64,000 bases of DNA, from sequence record OP617745.1; one strand, given 5' to 3'. The first letter of the stretch is position 1; the number at the start of each line of letters is the position of its first letter. The notes under the pieces were generated by a model. That model saw only the letters and a program-made list of their open reading frames with translations. It was not told the origin of the DNA and made no database searches. Both the position numbers and the translations under genes were made by a program. Positions 19,921 through 24,805 of this stretch are shown here, in pieces.

Positions 19921-20410
19921 ATGGAGGCGACTGTATTCAGTACTGAATCAATTGATCGTTGCGTAATCAGATTCAGTTAGCGTAGTATTAGCTGGGACGC
20001 GTACTTGTGAGCCGCAACCACAACGTACTTAAAATCCAACGCGTGGAGGGTAAGCATTCTGTACTGAATAGCAGAAGGGCTACAAAAACTTATACTTCAA
20101 AAAGGTTCGGGAAGTATTCGTAATAAACCGTTTAATCGTCTTATCAGTGCTATGAACAACCAATATATTTGTGGTGGATATTATTGGACTCAAGTAGATG
20201 ATGTTATCTTTGTACGCTTTCTAACCAAAAGGTCAGATAATAAAAATGTAAGAAAATTTCAGTACTGATAGCTGGAACCTTACTATAGTAAAAAGACCTG
20301 ATATGACTCGCTTAGGTCTTTAAATTATATAATGCGAGGGACGCTACGCCTTAGTTTAGGGCTAAATCGTAAGGATTGAGTACTAAACCGCCTTGAGAGT
20401 CCCAAGGCAA
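19921..20410 (+). ncRNA. large structured non-coding RNA candidate (~490 nt)
   Basis: No ORF >=60 aa, raised GC, nested helices TATTCAGTAC/GTACTGAATA, TATCAGTGCT/AGTACTGATA, AAGACCTGA/TTAGGTCTT, GCCTTG/CAAGGC. Confidence 0.6.
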
Positions 20411-20559
20411 CTTTTAATTTAAACAAATTTGTACAAAACACAAAAAGGTGATATAATGATTCTATCTGAAGAAGATTGGGGTGTTTATCCTAAAGACGAA
20501 TTTGATGGATTTTAATAAAAAATCTTGAACAAAAACAAAATAATGTGATATAATATTAG

Positions 20560-20687
20560 TACTGAATGAGGATAGGTGCAGTTGGTGAGATACCGCATGA
20601 GAAATCATAGACACCGTAGAAAGCGAAGGGCTTGGTGAGCGACGGCAATAGACAAGCATAGTAGAGGCTTGAAGAACTCATTTAGTA
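20560..20687 (+). ncRNA. structured RNA, copy 1 of duplicated motif
   Basis: Starts just after TTGAAC..TATAAT promoter; 11-bp closing stem TACTGAATGAG/CTCATTTAGTA; homologous to 21287..21386. Confidence 0.7.
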
Positions 20688-20792
20688 TTTTTTAATTTAA
20701 AGAATTATGCATTAGTTGTTTTAAATCAGTAAAACACCGAAGATGTAAGTACTATGTAGTATGTCAAAATCAAATATAATAAGAGTATACAT

Positions 20793-21266
20793 ATGAAAGT
20801 CAAATTGGGAAGTACTATCAAAGCAGGTTATACTGTTTCAGTTACAACGTGGGAAAATGATGGAGATAATTATCAAACAAATGACATTGTAGGTTTATCT
20901 AAAGAAGATGCCAAAATGTTTATTGATACTTTACCCATTTTTAAATCCGTTAATAGTAAAAAGAAAGGTCTTGGAAACAAAGAACTTAATATTAACCAGT
21001 ACTTGGGTAAGTTCGAAGACCTAATCAATAACAATATTATCACAGTGTCATTTGCTGAAAAATATTTTGGTTATATTAACCCAAATAGTGATTATGATGA
21101 AGATGAACAACAAGACACGATTATTGAAGCATTGTCTGAAATTCTAGGATATCCAGTTGAATACGATTATGGTTTTATCAGAGTCTTTGAAAAAGTTCAA
21201 GTACTCTTCTTCGATGAAGATACTGTAATTCCTTCAGGTTCGAAAGTAGACACCAGTACTTTATAA
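20793..21266 (+). CDS. hypothetical protein
   Basis: 157-aa ORF, TWENDGDNY motif. Confidence 0.8.
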   Translation: MKVKLGSTIKAGYTVSVTTWENDGDNYQTNDIVGLSKEDAKMFIDTLPIFKSVNSKKKGLGNKELNINQYLGKFEDLINNNIITVSFAEKYFGYINPNSDYDEDEQQDTIIEALSEILGYPVEYDYGFIRVFEKVQVLFFDEDTVIPSGSKVDTSTL

Positions 21267-21286
21267 CATATAAAATACAGAACAAA

Positions 21287-21386
21287 TACTGAATGAGGAT
21301 AGGTCATTGTGACCGGATGAAGTGAAAGGCTTGGTTAGCGACGGCAAAACCCAACCGTAGTAGAAGCTCTAGGAACTTATTCAGTA
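21287..21386 (+). ncRNA. structured RNA, copy 2 of duplicated motif
   Basis: TACTGAATGAG/CTTATTCAGTA closing stem; shared core GGCTTGGT.AGCGACGGCAA...TAGTAGA.GCT. Confidence 0.7.
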
Positions 21387-21407
21387 CATTTTAATTTAAA
21401 GAATTAT

Positions 21408-21503
21408 GCGGGTGTGGCGGTATTGGTTGTACGCAAAGGTCTTAAAAACCTTCAGAGGGCTTAAAATGCATTCCTCTTGTGAGTTCGAATCTCATCACCC
21501 GTA
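21408..21503 (+). tRNA. tRNA-Leu (UAA)
   Basis: GCGGGTG/CACCCGT acceptor, AAGGT-CTTAAAA-ACCTT anticodon arm, long variable arm, GTTCGAATC T-loop; CCA not encoded. Confidence 0.92.
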
Positions 21504-21523
21504 CTCATTAAATAGTCAATGGA

Positions 21524-22357
21524 TTGACACAAATGGCAAGAAAAGACATATTAGAACAAAAAGAATTAATATTAGATTTAATTTCCAAGAATACTACAAA
21601 ATCAACAATATGTAAGATTTTAAATTGTAAATCATCAACGTTAGATACGTATTTGAAAAAGATGGGTATTATATATAAAGGAAATCAATCTGGTAAAGGT
21701 AAAAAGAAGGGGATACATTCAAAATATGTCGAAGCTTCTAAATTTCTTAATAAAAATTCATCAATTAGTTCTAATCAATTAAAAAGAAAATTATTGAGAG
21801 AAGGATATTTTGAACACAAATGTTCAAAATGTGGATTAACTGAATGGATGGGTAAACCAATACCAATCGAACTTGAACATAAAGATGGTGATAACACCAA
21901 TAATGAAATAGAAAACTTATGTTTACTGTGTCCAAATTGTCATGCACAAACTGATACATATAAAGGTAAAAATATTAAATCAGTTCGTGAAAAGAAACAT
22001 ATACAAGAAATATTAGATTTTGAAAATTCTTTTGAACGTTCAAAAATAAAAGAACCAATAGAAAATAAAAAGAGAATTCTCAAAATCAAAGAAATTAAAA
22101 AGTGTGAGGAATGCGGTAATGAATATACTGGAAGATCCAAAAAATATTGTTCACATGCTTGTCTTCATTTATCACAAAGAAAATTTAATTTGACATATGA
22201 AGAATTAAAAGATATAATATGGAAATATCCAAGAACAAAAATTGGTGAAATGTATAATGTTTCGGATAATACTGTTCTTAAACGTTGTAGACTGCTAGGT
22301 ATAGAAGTTCCACCATTAGGATATTTTTTAAGTTCAGAATATAAAGATAAAAATTAG
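21524..22357 (+). CDS. free-standing HNH homing endonuclease
   Basis: CSKC...ELEHKDGDNTNNEIENLCLLCPNCH plus C-terminal Zn/HTH modules. Confidence 0.9.
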   Translation: MTQMARKDILEQKELILDLISKNTTKSTICKILNCKSSTLDTYLKKMGIIYKGNQSGKGKKKGIHSKYVEASKFLNKNSSISSNQLKRKLLREGYFEHKCSKCGLTEWMGKPIPIELEHKDGDNTNNEIENLCLLCPNCHAQTDTYKGKNIKSVREKKHIQEILDFENSFERSKIKEPIENKKRILKIKEIKKCEECGNEYTGRSKKYCSHACLHLSQRKFNLTYEELKDIIWKYPRTKIGEMYNVSDNTVLKRCRLLGIEVPPLGYFLSSEYKDKN

Positions 22358-22391
22358 TACTTAATTATTCAGTACTAAATACACCAACAAA

Positions 22392-22467
<76 letters not shown>

Positions 22468-22472
22468 AATTC

Positions 22473-22568
22473 AACAGGTAGTAACGCTCTTAGGTGTACA
22501 TTAATATAGGAATAAGGGTTAACAGTACTGTACACAAACGAGTAACCCCGAAAGACCCGAAACCTGTT
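22473..22568 (+). ncRNA. pseudoknot-containing structured RNA candidate
   Basis: AACAGGT/ACCTGTT closing stem, GTGTACA/TGTACAC stem, loop GGTTAAC complementary to downstream GTAACC. Confidence 0.5.
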
Positions 22569-22578
22569 AAAGTTTTAC

Positions 22579-22628
22579 GGATGATTATAAATCTGAATTG
22601 ACAGAAACAGCTAAAACTGTTATTATCC
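22579..22628 (+). ncRNA. 50-nt three-way-junction motif, copy 1
   Basis: GGATGAT-TATAAA-TCTG AATTGA CAGA-AACAG CTAAAA CTGTT-ATTATCC. Confidence 0.7.
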
Positions 22629-22636
22629 TATTTTAT

Positions 22637-22821
22637 TCCACAATCAGACGTATATGGTGTAAGTTACGTCGATGAAATCCAGAACAAGATCTCTGGTACT
22701 CTAGGAAGTGGTGAATGTTAACCTAGACGGGTTTGTTAATTGGACGATAAGCAATTAATACTTGACTAGCAGGTTTAAACTAGAGGTGACTGTCCTTCAC
22801 TATACTGGAAAACCGGGTGGA
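22637..22821 (+). ncRNA. multi-hairpin structured RNA candidate
   Basis: TCCAC/GTGGA closes hairpins GACGTA/TACGTC, CCAGA/TCTGG, CTAGG/CCTAG, TTAATTG/CAATTAA, CTAG/CTAG, GTGA/TCAC. Confidence 0.5.
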
Positions 22822-22830
22822 CTTTTAATT

Positions 22831-22867
22831 AAAAAGTGTTGAACAAAATGTTCAATAATGATATAAT
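22831..22867 (+). promoter_or_regulatory. tRNA-cluster promoter with TTGAAC-N5-GTTCAA palindrome
   Basis: TTGAAC-17-TATAAT with inverted repeat over -35. Confidence 0.8.
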
Positions 22868-22958
22868 AAGTATCAATGTAAGGCATGGAACAATGTTTAC
22901 AGAAGTTACTTAGTAGCCTGTACGCCCCATGTCAAGGTAGCCGAAAGGCAAGTTTAAT

Positions 22959-23008
22959 GGGTGGTTATAAATCTGAATTGACAGAGACTATTAAAACAGT
23001 CACCATCC
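22959..23008 (+). ncRNA. 50-nt three-way-junction motif, copy 2
   Basis: GGGTGGT-TATAAA-TCTG AATTGA CAGA-GACT..AGTC-ACCATCC. Confidence 0.7.
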
Positions 23009-23194
23009 AAATTTTAATTTAATAGTTTAGTATGAATAAAAAACAAATACATAAACATTATGATGAAATTGCAGTGAAGGTTTTTCGTGGTGAATTAGGT
23101 TATAAACCATCTGTTAAATCTAAATATTCAAAATCTTCTTCAATAAAGTTCAATCATAAAATAGAGTTTAAATAATACTGGACAATAATATATA

Positions 23195-23644
23195 ATGAAT
23201 ATCACTAATGTAAAAGATTTTTTAGAATATTTTATTAAGAATACTCGTGCACGTGATGAATTAGAAAAGAATGGATTCATCCAAGGTTACGATTGCACTA
23301 ATTTCTTTTATACTATAGATAAACATGAATATTATGTCGATGCAATTTTAATTGATGATGATGGGTATTGTGTTGGATTTTCGTTCGAAGATATATCACA
23401 AGATGCACCAATAAACTTTTATGCATTATATTATAATAAAAAAGATAATATTTTGAAATTAGGATTTACCAGTGACACGGATGAAGATGTTGTATTCAAT
23501 TGTAACACATGGTTGGAACATGATTCATTCTTTCAAAGTACATTAATTCATAACTTTATGACAACAGATTTAGAGTACTGGAAAAATTGCATAGAATTAC
23601 TTAATGTAATTTATAATGAACAAATCAAACAAAAATGGCAATAA
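23195..23644 (+). CDS. FQxS(T/L) C-terminal-motif family protein
   Basis: WLEHDSFFQSTLIHNF.TTDLEYWKNC. Confidence 0.8.
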   Translation: MNITNVKDFLEYFIKNTRARDELEKNGFIQGYDCTNFFYTIDKHEYYVDAILIDDDGYCVGFSFEDISQDAPINFYALYYNKKDNILKLGFTSDTDEDVVFNCNTWLEHDSFFQSTLIHNFMTTDLEYWKNCIELLNVIYNEQIKQKWQ

Positions 23645-23700
23645 TCACAGAACGGTTCAGCATTTGGTAGTATGTTTGACTGAATAAAGCATAAACGTGT

Positions 23701-23737
23701 AAAAAAGTGTTGAACAAAAAGTTCAGTACTATATAAT
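23701..23737 (+). promoter_or_regulatory. tRNA-cluster promoter
   Basis: TTGAAC AAAAA GTTCAG..TATAAT. Confidence 0.75.
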
Positions 23738-23748
23738 TGACTTACTAC

Positions 23749-23822
23749 GTCCCCTTAGTTCAGTTGGATAGAACAACTGCCTTCTAAGCAGTAGGTCACT
23801 GGTTCGAGTCCAGTAGGGGATA
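23749..23822 (+). tRNA. tRNA-Arg (UCU)
   Basis: GTCCCCT/AGGGGAT, ACTGC-CTTCTAA-GCAGT, GGTTCGAGTCC. Confidence 0.92.
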
Positions 23823-23869
23823 TACCATACAATATGGGAATAGTTAGAAGATATTCCCAATTTTAATTT

Positions 23870-23907
23870 AAAAAAGTGTTGAACAAAAAGTTCAATAATG
23901 ATATAAT
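23870..23907 (+). promoter_or_regulatory. tRNA-cluster promoter
   Basis: TTGAAC AAAAA GTTCAA..TGATATAAT. Confidence 0.8.
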
Positions 23908-23970
23908 GGTATTATAAAAGGTTGTAATACTTAATATTAACTTTTAAGAAGATAATTAGTATTATACACA

Positions 23971-24062
<92 letters not shown>

Positions 24063-24074
24063 TAAAATTCAATT

Positions 24075-24112
24075 AAAAAAGTGTTGAACAAAAAGTTCAA
24101 TGCTGATATAAT
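24075..24112 (+). promoter_or_regulatory. tRNA-cluster promoter
   Basis: TTGAAC AAAAA GTTCAA..TGATATAAT. Confidence 0.8.
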
Positions 24113-24120
24113 AAAAGAAT

Positions 24121-24211
<91 letters not shown>

Positions 24212-24219
24212 GATTTTAT

Positions 24220-24269
24220 GGATAGTTATAAAGTTGAATTAACAGCGACACTTAAAATTGTCACTATCC
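24220..24269 (+). ncRNA. 50-nt three-way-junction motif, copy 3
   Basis: GGATAGT-TATAAA-GTTG AATTAA CAGC-GACA..TGTC-ACTATCC. Confidence 0.7.
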
Positions 24270-24284
24270 AAATTTTAATTTAAA

Positions 24285-24319
24285 TAGTACTTGACAAAAA
24301 TGTTCAGTACTGATACAAT
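24285..24319 (+). promoter_or_regulatory. promoter of intron-containing tRNA
   Basis: TTGACA-17-TACAAT with GTTCAG half site. Confidence 0.7.
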
Positions 24320-24329
24320 AAAGAATATT

Positions 24330-24640
24330 GGCCCCTTAGCTCACGCTTTGGTTAGAGCAGACGACTCATCGATAAATGGTGACTTTCACAAGTAATTGTG
24401 ATTGAAAAACTGGATGAATTCAGGGAAACCTTAACACATAATGGTGATGGCAATCCTGAGCCAAGCCCAATAAGCGTATTGGGAAGGTGCAGAGACTAGG
24501 TGGTTCAGCACGATCTTGCTGTGTAATACACCAATAGCGTCCGGCATCCTTATAGGATGATGATATAGTCCTTTCTATAATGAAAATTATAGGTAAAAAG
24601 AATCGTTTGGTACTGTGTTCGACTCACAGAGGGGCCACCA
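24330..24640 (+). tRNA. tRNA-Ile2 (CAU, ileX-like) split by a group I intron; exons 24330..24369 and 24601..24640
   Basis: Joined exons give GGCCCCT/AGGGGCC acceptor, GACGA-CTCAT^AA-TCGTT anticodon arm, T arm and ACCA, closely like E. coli ileX. Confidence 0.88.
24370..24600 (+). mobile_element. group I intron (IC3-like), 231 nt, no ORF
   Basis: Preceded by U, ends in G; P1 TCAT^CG/TGGTGA with U.G; P3 CTGGATG/CGTCCGG; TCAGGGAAACC, GGCAATCCTGAGCCAAG, GAAGGTGCAGAGACTA, GATATAGTCC cores; P9 CTATAAT-GAAA-ATTATAG. Confidence 0.92.
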
Positions 24641-24643
24641 CAC

Positions 24644-24719
24644 ATTGTACTCTTCTCCCGTAAGGAGAATGACAAAAAGCTATCCTAAAGATAGAAAGCC
24701 TGAATTAACAGGGTGCAAT
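24644..24719 (+). ncRNA. permuted variant of the 50-nt motif
   Basis: ATTGTAC/GTGCAAT closes TTCTCC/GGAGAA, CTATC-CTAAA-GATAG and CCTG-AATTAA-CAGG hairpins. Confidence 0.55.
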
Positions 24720-24730
24720 TAAAATACATT

Positions 24731-24805
24731 GGTTCGTTGGCCTATTGGTCGGGCAGCAAACTGTTAATTTGCCTCAAACTAGTTCAATTCTAGTACGAAC
24801 CGCCA
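24731..24805 (+). tRNA. tRNA-Asn (GUU)
   Basis: GGTTCGT/ACGAACC, GCAAA-CTGTTAA-TTTGC, GCCA end. Confidence 0.92.

Follow-up and report, generated by a model that had tools for sequence, protein, structure and literature searches.

Ever since T4, the tRNA islands of phages have been known as sites of stable RNAs that are not tRNAs, none of which has a known function. The ROOL and GOLLD RNAs are conserved structured RNAs, again with no known function, that commonly occur close to tRNA genes of phages or prophages, while the putL and putR sequences of phage HK022 are two homologous RNA elements that lie just downstream of promoters and act without being translated. In T4, RNAC and RNAD are stable RNAs made from the tRNA region, with no known role (PMC3014915; PMC9697503). 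In addition, RNA-seq revealed two abundant non-coding transcripts, ncRNA001 and ncRNA002, in PA5oct, a jumbo phage related to the RaK2-like phages (PMC7318152).

Here, we analysed a stretch of 64,000 nucleotides from sequence record OP617745.1 (the window), which is 100% identical to Klebsiella phage KP13-7 (357.7 kb), a RaK2-like jumbo phage of the genus Alcyoneusvirus. It contains a pair of small RNA genes whose setting is, by analogy, like that of T4 RNAC and RNAD, which are thought to be processed stable RNAs and are likewise encoded by two small genes, of 139 and 119 nt, that do not specify tRNAs but lie in the tRNA cluster of a phage, adjoining a homing-endonuclease gene. Still, the two pairs appear to be separate families: our covariance model (CM) gave no match in the T4 tRNA region (L002), and no similarity in sequence or structure was seen when the sequences were compared by eye. 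By the same comparison, T4 rnaC ends in a tRNA-like T arm that the KP13-7 RNA does not have, and RNAC and RNAD are located at the distal end of their cluster whereas the KP13-7-type RNA is usually promoter-proximal. The other systems differ as well. ROOL and GOLLD are 500-800 nt long, versus ~100-130 nt and no Rfam match here, and the HK022 put RNAs, made of two stem-loops, exert their effect on RNA polymerase in cis, whereas the RNA described here is a closed three-way junction that, in Erwinia phage Kaldavass, is located between tRNAs and not beside a promoter. When PA5oct ncRNA001 and ncRNA002 were considered as relatives, the unfiltered covariance model detected nothing above noise in that region. 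Full-text searches of the literature brought up nothing relevant on the motif or on the transcriptomes and small RNAs that RaK2-like phages may have.

Two paralogous RNA genes at the start of a tRNA island

The tRNA island of KP13-7 (21408-24805) encodes tRNA-Leu, Gly, Arg, Ser, Ser and Asn and also contains repeated sigma-70 promoter cassettes, HNH endonuclease genes and a group I intron. The window region is matched at 97-99% identity in four other RaK2-like Alcyoneusvirus phages (Muenster, K64-1, RCIP0023 and phiKp_21). At the start of the island lie the two RNA genes, copy 1 (20560..20687, 128 nt, CM score of 93.7 bits) and copy 2 (21287..21386, 100 nt, 117.6 bits), which are paralogues on the + strand, co-oriented with the tRNAs, with an ORF of 157 aa between them (20793..21266, + strand, PHROG 2290). 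An earlier note, made from the letters of this DNA alone, had described them as homologous small RNAs, and their sequences are indeed as it described: both begin with the same 18 nt (TACTGAATGAGGATAGGT), and the 20-nt GGCTTGGT.AGCGACGGCAA of the shared core occurs exactly twice in 64 kb, when 0.01 occurrences are expected by chance.

The positions that the note had given to the two copies relative to a promoter and to a tRNA gene were also correct. Copy 1 starts 5 nt 3' of a sigma-70-type promoter (20525..20554, + strand) made of TTGAAC, 18 nt and TATAAT with a TG extended -10, and the predicted transcript start (~20559-20561) corresponds to the first bases of P1, the helix that closes the RNA. 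Copy 2 ends 21 nt upstream of the gene for tRNA-Leu(UAA) (21408..21504, + strand, 97 nt), which is the next gene after the RNA in four of the five lineages described below. Since the U/A-rich spacer of 21 nt that separates them (21387..21407, + strand) contains no promoter, this tRNA-Leu must be transcribed by read-through from upstream. A U/A-rich spacer (UUUUUUAAUUUAAAGAAUUAUGC, 20688..20710, + strand) is also found 3' of copy 1; it contains TTTTAATTTAAA and was duplicated along with the RNA, the duplicated unit being the RNA plus the 21-23 nt of U/A-rich spacer that follow each copy. A direct-repeat scan detected the copies as a repeat (D3) of 106 nt with 79% identity, reaching 20710 and 21409. 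This TTTTAATTTAAA, which both copies have in their 3' U/A tract, is also the motif that comes after terminator hairpins at other places in the island. The neighbouring ORFs gave no clue to a function, as they correspond only to PHROGs without an assigned function and to HNH endonucleases, with no co-occurring protein gene.

No known RNA family accounts for the element, in agreement with the note, whose author did not recognize it. Using Rfam 15 (4227 models), only tRNA-Leu reached the threshold and no model matched either copy of the window at E<=10, nor was there a match over the element in the homologues from the metagenomic contig L056 and from Kaldavass. The 5S and YrlA models did not match the element in any of these three sequences, neither ARAGORN nor the Rfam tRNA models made a call over 20560-20687 or 21287-21386, and a GTTCRANYC-type T loop is absent from both copies. 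The ribozyme models of Rfam 15 (hammerhead, twister, twister-sister, pistol, hatchet, HDV-like, hairpin and others) gave no match at E=10; the 5' end CUGAAUGAG resembles the CUGAUGA box of the hammerhead, but this is not retained in L006, 7t3 and L056.

Other elements of this region were noted in passing. A promoter cassette of ~53 nt (AAAAAGTGTTGAACAAAAAGTTCAATAATGATATAAT and variants, repeat family D1) occurs at six sites in 20405-24319 and drives most of the island's RNA genes. A second promoter-proximal small structured unit just 5' of copy 1 (20334-20423) covers ~75 nt after a TATAAT at ~20328-20333, ends in a terminator hairpin (20390-20408) plus TTTTAATTTAAA, is kept in RaK2 and OU509535 and has no Rfam match. 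Between this unit and the copy 1 promoter, a micro-ORF of 19 codons (20456-20515, MILSEEDWGVYPKDEFDGF) with an AAGGTG Shine-Dalgarno sequence shows a single, synonymous, difference in OU509535 (CCT -> CCC). An element of 70 nt is found three times (22573-22642, 22953-23022 and 24214-24283, 70-83% identical) as a long hairpin ending in AAATTTTAATTTAA, and these hairpins terminate the tRNA-Ser(tga) unit as well as transcription units that are non-coding. The segments 22475-22640, 22640-22830 and 22880-23020 have promoters and no plausible ORFs, so that further small RNAs are likely. Finally, a tRNA(CAU) gene that ARAGORN missed (24330-24640) is split by a group I intron of 231 nt (24370-24600; Rfam Intron_gpI, 104 bits), which is inserted in the anticodon loop immediately 3' of the anticodon, is preceded by a U and has a G as its last base. 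Once its exons are joined, ARAGORN calls it tRNA-Met(cat) at a relaxed threshold, with an encoded CCA.

Predicted fold and conservation of the RNA

Judging from the aligned sequences, the RNA is a three-way junction made of a helix P1 closed by both ends of the molecule, a variable short hairpin P2 and a hairpin P3 with 5 bp and an 18-nt loop (all features on the + strand). In copy 1, P1 (20560-20570 with 20677-20687) is followed by J1/2 (GAUA, 20571-20574), P2 (20575-20615), J2/3 (20616-20629), P3 (20630-20634 with 20653-20657, loop 20635-20652) and J3/1 (20658-20676). In copy 2, the corresponding positions are 21287-21297 with 21376-21386 for P1, 21298-21301 for J1/2, 21302-21314 for P2, 21315-21328 for J2/3, 21329-21333 with 21352-21356 for P3 (loop 21334-21351) and 21357-21375 for J3/1. 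The 11-bp closing stem that had been noticed earlier is retained by each copy with its own 3' end and includes one G.U pair in each (G5.U in copy 1, G9.U in copy 2). Such G.U pairs become A.C mismatches if read on the opposite strand, and copy 1 folds better on the + strand (MFE of -31.7 kcal/mol, z of -3.06) than on the reverse strand (-23.5 kcal/mol). The one hairpin region reported to vary between the copies turned out to be P2, which is enlarged by ~28 nt in copy 1, where GGUG/CACC closes two sub-hairpins, one of them with a GAAA loop. In copy 2, one P3 pair is a C.C mismatch and J2/3, which is otherwise fixed, differs at five positions.

The same note had claimed compensatory changes between the two copies, which holds only in part: a single pair of P2 is flipped (G-C versus C-G), but the differences in P1 are one-sided exchanges of G-C and G.U. 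It is when other phages are compared, and not from P1 of the window copies, that two-sided changes that keep the fold appear. The 5' strand of P1 is UACUGAAUGAG, AUCAGACGG, AUCAGGAUGG, ACAGGAAGG or GUAAUUAAG, each of which complements its own 3' end, even if only 3-4 of 18 P1 positions are identical to copy 1 in L006, 7t3 and L056. The base of P2 is GGU/ACC (GGC/GCC in Kaldavass), with C-G, U-A or G-C as a fourth pair, and P3 occurs as GCUUG/CAAGC, GUGUG/CACAU, GUGCA/UGCAU or UUAUA/UAUAA, with 1-5 of 10 positions identical to copy 1 in L006, 7t3 and L056. When all members were aligned to the model, P1, P2 and P3 were found to be retained across five diverged lineages despite these sequence changes, with 97% of cells paired, compared to 24-46% in controls where the partner was slid by 1-3 columns. 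Two-sided changes were found in 16 of 20 pairs in the five lineages and none of 500 shuffles reached the observed covariation score, although these statistics rest on few independent events because the family is small (five lineages, ~10 isolates and two metagenomic contigs).

An all-against-all covariation scan for additional pairs returned noise only, the lineages being few. Two other pairings were considered and not adopted: a pseudoknot between GAGC of the P3 loop and GCUU/GCUC of J3/1, which RNAalifold preferred, shows only one-sided changes and is broken in Kaldavass, and an alternative helix between AAGC of J2/3 and GCUU of J3/1 does not covary and has mismatches in copy 2 and 7t3.

The strands that join the helices are nearly invariant, as 12-14 of 14 positions in the purine-rich J2/3 (AGAAAGCGAA) and 16-19 of 19 in J3/1 (UAGUAG.GGCU..A.GAAC) are identical to copy 1 in other phages; copies 1 and 2 share TAGTAGA.GCT....GAAC in J3/1. 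The columns that do not vary in any member are the last P1 pair and the GGA, the GG/CC of P2 and then a G, AAG..AA.G in J2/3 and UAGUAG..GCU..A.GAAC in J3/1. This is not where the earlier note had placed an invariant unpaired core: its AGCGACGGCAA is in fact the middle of the 18-nt loop of the covarying hairpin P3 and, identical as it is in the Klebsiella and Salmonella phages, it is replaced by the unrelated UUCAUCUAUAGGGAAC in Kaldavass, which retains both junction strands. Within the junction, the GAA of J2/3 just 5' of P3 faces the AGUA of J3/1 just 3' of P3, and these may form a bulged-G (S-turn / loop E) platform, a motif that frequently serves to bind proteins. The G of this GAA is altered in RaK2 only. 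The GAAA tetraloop in the copy 1 extension and the GAA and UAGUAG kept across lineages may also hint at a tertiary fold. In size (~120 nt), as a three-way junction closed by its ends and in the 5'-to-3' order of an arm with a loop E / S-turn, the RNA recalls 5S rRNA; however, its arms are much shorter, no 5S model matches at E=10 and its S-turn is a prediction, so the resemblance is architectural only. Altogether, we consider it very likely that the element is a real structured RNA under selection.

Distribution among giant phages

To find homologues, IMG/VR, JGI metagenomes and GTDB genomes were scanned with sequence patterns, and the pattern-seeded loci were then screened with the covariance model. 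This search yielded only RaK2, the 360-kb metagenomic contig L006 (= L030), the 366-kb contig L056 and Kaldavass (L117 = L036), the other pattern matches being due to chance. The covariance-model search that the note had suggested for phage genomes, done here on these loci, did uncover diverged homologues, and only in giant phages; these include the isolates Salmonella phages 7t3 and SE_PL and Erwinia phage Kaldavass. In total, ~10 isolates and two metagenomic giant-phage contigs from five lineages carry the RNA, always adjoining tRNA genes. Between KP13-7 and the L006 phage, the RNA core is the sole blastn alignment. Bacterial genomes (GTDB pattern scans and CM screening) yielded no member, nor did the tRNA regions of GAP32, XbC2 and CBB or 40 kb of EJP2 sequence with several tRNA genes, and weak CM matches in L070 and L035 were discarded, being located inside long ORFs.

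In Alcyoneusvirus, L006, 7t3 and L056, a strong sigma-70 -10 box precedes the RNA by 5-6 nt and tRNA-Leu(UAA) is located downstream. In the last three, gatataat or cctataat is followed by 5-6 nt and then P1, and the distance from the RNA to tRNA-Leu is 21 nt in Alcyoneusvirus. In Kaldavass, the RNA starts directly 3' of the CCA of tRNA-Ser(UGA) and is followed by a tRNA-like element and tRNA-Lys. Since only 7-8 nt separate the same two flanking tRNAs in XbC2 and CBB, the RNA behaves as one more cassette of the tRNA cluster.

Two further structures were seen near these loci. The Kaldavass tRNA-like element has an acceptor-like stem and a T arm with a UUCAACU loop, is not called by tRNA finders and has a weak match to YrlA (E=0.11) as its best Rfam hit. 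In Kaldavass, XbC2 and GAP32, the tRNA-Lys(UUU) gene measures 122-127 nt and includes ~48 inserted nt close to the anticodon arm (L117 6209-6285 and 6294-6415, L118 6113-6234 and L004 8911-9037 for this element and the long tRNA-Lys genes). In the 7t3 / Munch group, a second conserved structure of ~150 nt with no Rfam match is located between the RNA, or its remnant hairpin, and tRNA-Leu (L025 4133-4260; L006 (-) 4300-4160; L056 3076-3220; also L026-L028); it consists of a closing stem GUUGAG...CUCAAC around two hairpins and then a long GGAAUCC...GGAUUCC stem.

The number of copies varies among close relatives. Both copies, with the 157-aa ORF in between, are found in KP13-7, Muenster, K64-1 and RCIP0023, and also in phiKp_21 as judged by two blastn places. 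OU509535 has one copy of the copy 1 type, then the spacer and tRNA-Leu, and RaK2 has a single chimeric copy made of a copy 1 5' part and a copy 2 3' part, with two P1 mismatches and a changed junction G. The ORF is absent from these two single-copy phages, and copy 2 plus the ORF thus look like a cassette that was gained or lost by recombination within the RNA gene. Among close relatives of 7t3, Munch, fENko-Kae01 and PHA46 retain the promoter, the downstream structure and tRNA-Leu and have lost the core, with a short P1-like hairpin left in its place. The element is therefore dispensable at least for these phages and, considering also the mismatches and the changed G of RaK2, selection on it is not universal.

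The tRNA-Leu(UAA) gene of Alcyoneusvirus itself exists as two alleles (window 21408-22357; L031 2519-2959; L003 3310-3750). One allele, of 97 nt and with a long variable arm, has a T5 TflIV-like HNH endonuclease gene after it (KP13-7 and Muenster), and the other, of 88 nt, a 324-nt ORF (RaK2 and RCIP0023; by sequence also K64-1 and OU509535). Homology between the alleles breaks exactly at the tRNA start, which suggests an exchange driven by homing endonucleases.

Possible roles of the RNA

As a working model, we propose that this previously uncatalogued family consists of stable structured RNAs that are carried as a tRNA-island cassette, released by tRNA processing and active in trans through protein binding. 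We give this whole chain a probability of roughly 0.5. For its transcription, processing, stability and binding partner, we infer the following path. The host sigma-70 RNA polymerase would transcribe the RNA early and strongly from the upstream promoter, or together with the adjacent tRNAs. Nucleases that process tRNAs would then release it: RNase P by cutting where the downstream tRNA begins, and RNase E and exonucleases by acting in the U/A-rich spacer. P1 would seal both ends, allowing the molecule to accumulate as a stable RNA, and the conserved junction would bind a host or phage protein, probably in the sphere of tRNA metabolism, translation or defence against host systems directed at tRNAs.

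The element might instead act in cis, as a leader or attenuator of the tRNA-Leu(UAA) unit that sets read-through together with its U tract, perhaps in response to a ligand or protein as riboswitches do, or that helps the stability or processing of the precursor. Indeed, in four of the five lineages (Alcyoneusvirus, L006, 7t3 and L056), the sole visible promoter is on one side of it and tRNA-Leu on the other, P1 is followed in Alcyoneusvirus by UUUUUUAAUUU or CAUUUUAAUUU, the same U/A tract as after the bona fide terminator hairpins of the island, and aptamers likewise show conserved junctions and variable stems. However, the Kaldavass element sits between two tRNAs and has no U tract, P1 of L006, 7t3 and L056 has no clear U run and is separated from the tRNA by ~150 nt with the other conserved structure, copy 1 of the window precedes an ORF rather than a tRNA, and the core-less relatives still have the promoter and tRNA-Leu. 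No alternative anti-terminator pairing was found and a terminator scan gave no call at P1 plus the U tract. On the whole, we regard a cis-acting role as unlikely, even if the location of the element at the 5' end of the tRNA-Leu transcript in four lineages would suit a role in cis just as well as one in trans.

A new class of small self-cleaving ribozymes, excising the RNA or its tRNA neighbours from polycistronic precursors, would fit the size of the element, its three helices around strictly conserved junctions and the GNRA-capped extension of copy 1, all of which resemble small nucleolytic ribozymes. It would also fit Kaldavass, where P1 directly follows the CCA of the upstream tRNA and thus leaves no single-stranded room for RNase E. 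We nevertheless regard self-cleavage as very unlikely: besides the lack of a match to the Rfam 15 ribozyme models at E=10, the RNA begins at the predicted transcription start site in four lineages, so that a 5' cleavage would have no purpose there, and its 3' side would already be freed by RNase P.

A functionless, decaying remnant (for instance a degenerate tRNA, a piece of an intron or a duplicated spacer) comes to mind when considering the relatives that have lost the core, the C.C mismatch and the five J2/3 changes of copy 2 and the chimeric, mismatched copy of RaK2. This explanation is hardly credible given the compensatory changes in all three helices and the near-identical junctions in phages whose flanks no longer align, and neither ARAGORN nor the Rfam tRNA and intron models gave a match. 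Lastly, a protein-coding sequence, as could be suspected from the minus-strand ORFs 20462-20659 and 20556-20681 of the window and from the short hypothetical proteins that some records place across the element on the minus strand (such as 7t3_040 and a PHA46 CDS over the homologue), is ruled out by indels of 1 nt (a deletion in K64-1 and RCIP0023), 10 nt (a duplication in RCIP0023) and 28 nt (between the copies), while substitutions fit paired stems and these ORFs are antisense to an element that is on the strand of all surrounding genes.

Going beyond the proposed stable RNA that acts in trans, one could imagine a new class of jumbo-phage RNAs whose junction core either is the catalytic centre of a novel ribozyme that cleaves itself or acts on tRNAs, or binds tightly, as a decoy or aptamer, a host factor that works on tRNAs or the ribosome, for example a defence nuclease that targets tRNAs. 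We find this pair of ideas, taken together, quite doubtful. As part of it, the variable P3 loop, which the Klebsiella and Salmonella phages share but the Erwinia phage does not, would tune the RNA to the host; no antisense target of this loop was found within the window.

On this comparative evidence, the KP13-7-type element is a genuine new family of small RNAs with good comparative support for its fold, a narrow distribution in RaK2-like giant phages and a tie to tRNA islands. It represents a second, unrelated family of tRNA-island RNAs, with a clear fold and a strictly conserved junction, and several records annotate short hypothetical proteins across an RNA gene. As phages are already known for such RNAs, this will not yet surprise specialists. 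Natural knock-outs are at hand, since 7t3 carries the element while Munch, fENko-Kae01 and PHA46 are core-less, and KP13-7 has two copies while OU509535 has one. With natural carriers and non-carriers among existing isolates, the old question on the RNAs of tRNA islands becomes testable and worth a bench test. If its junction does bind a host factor or is catalytic, jumbo phages would have in this RNA a new means of competing over tRNAs.
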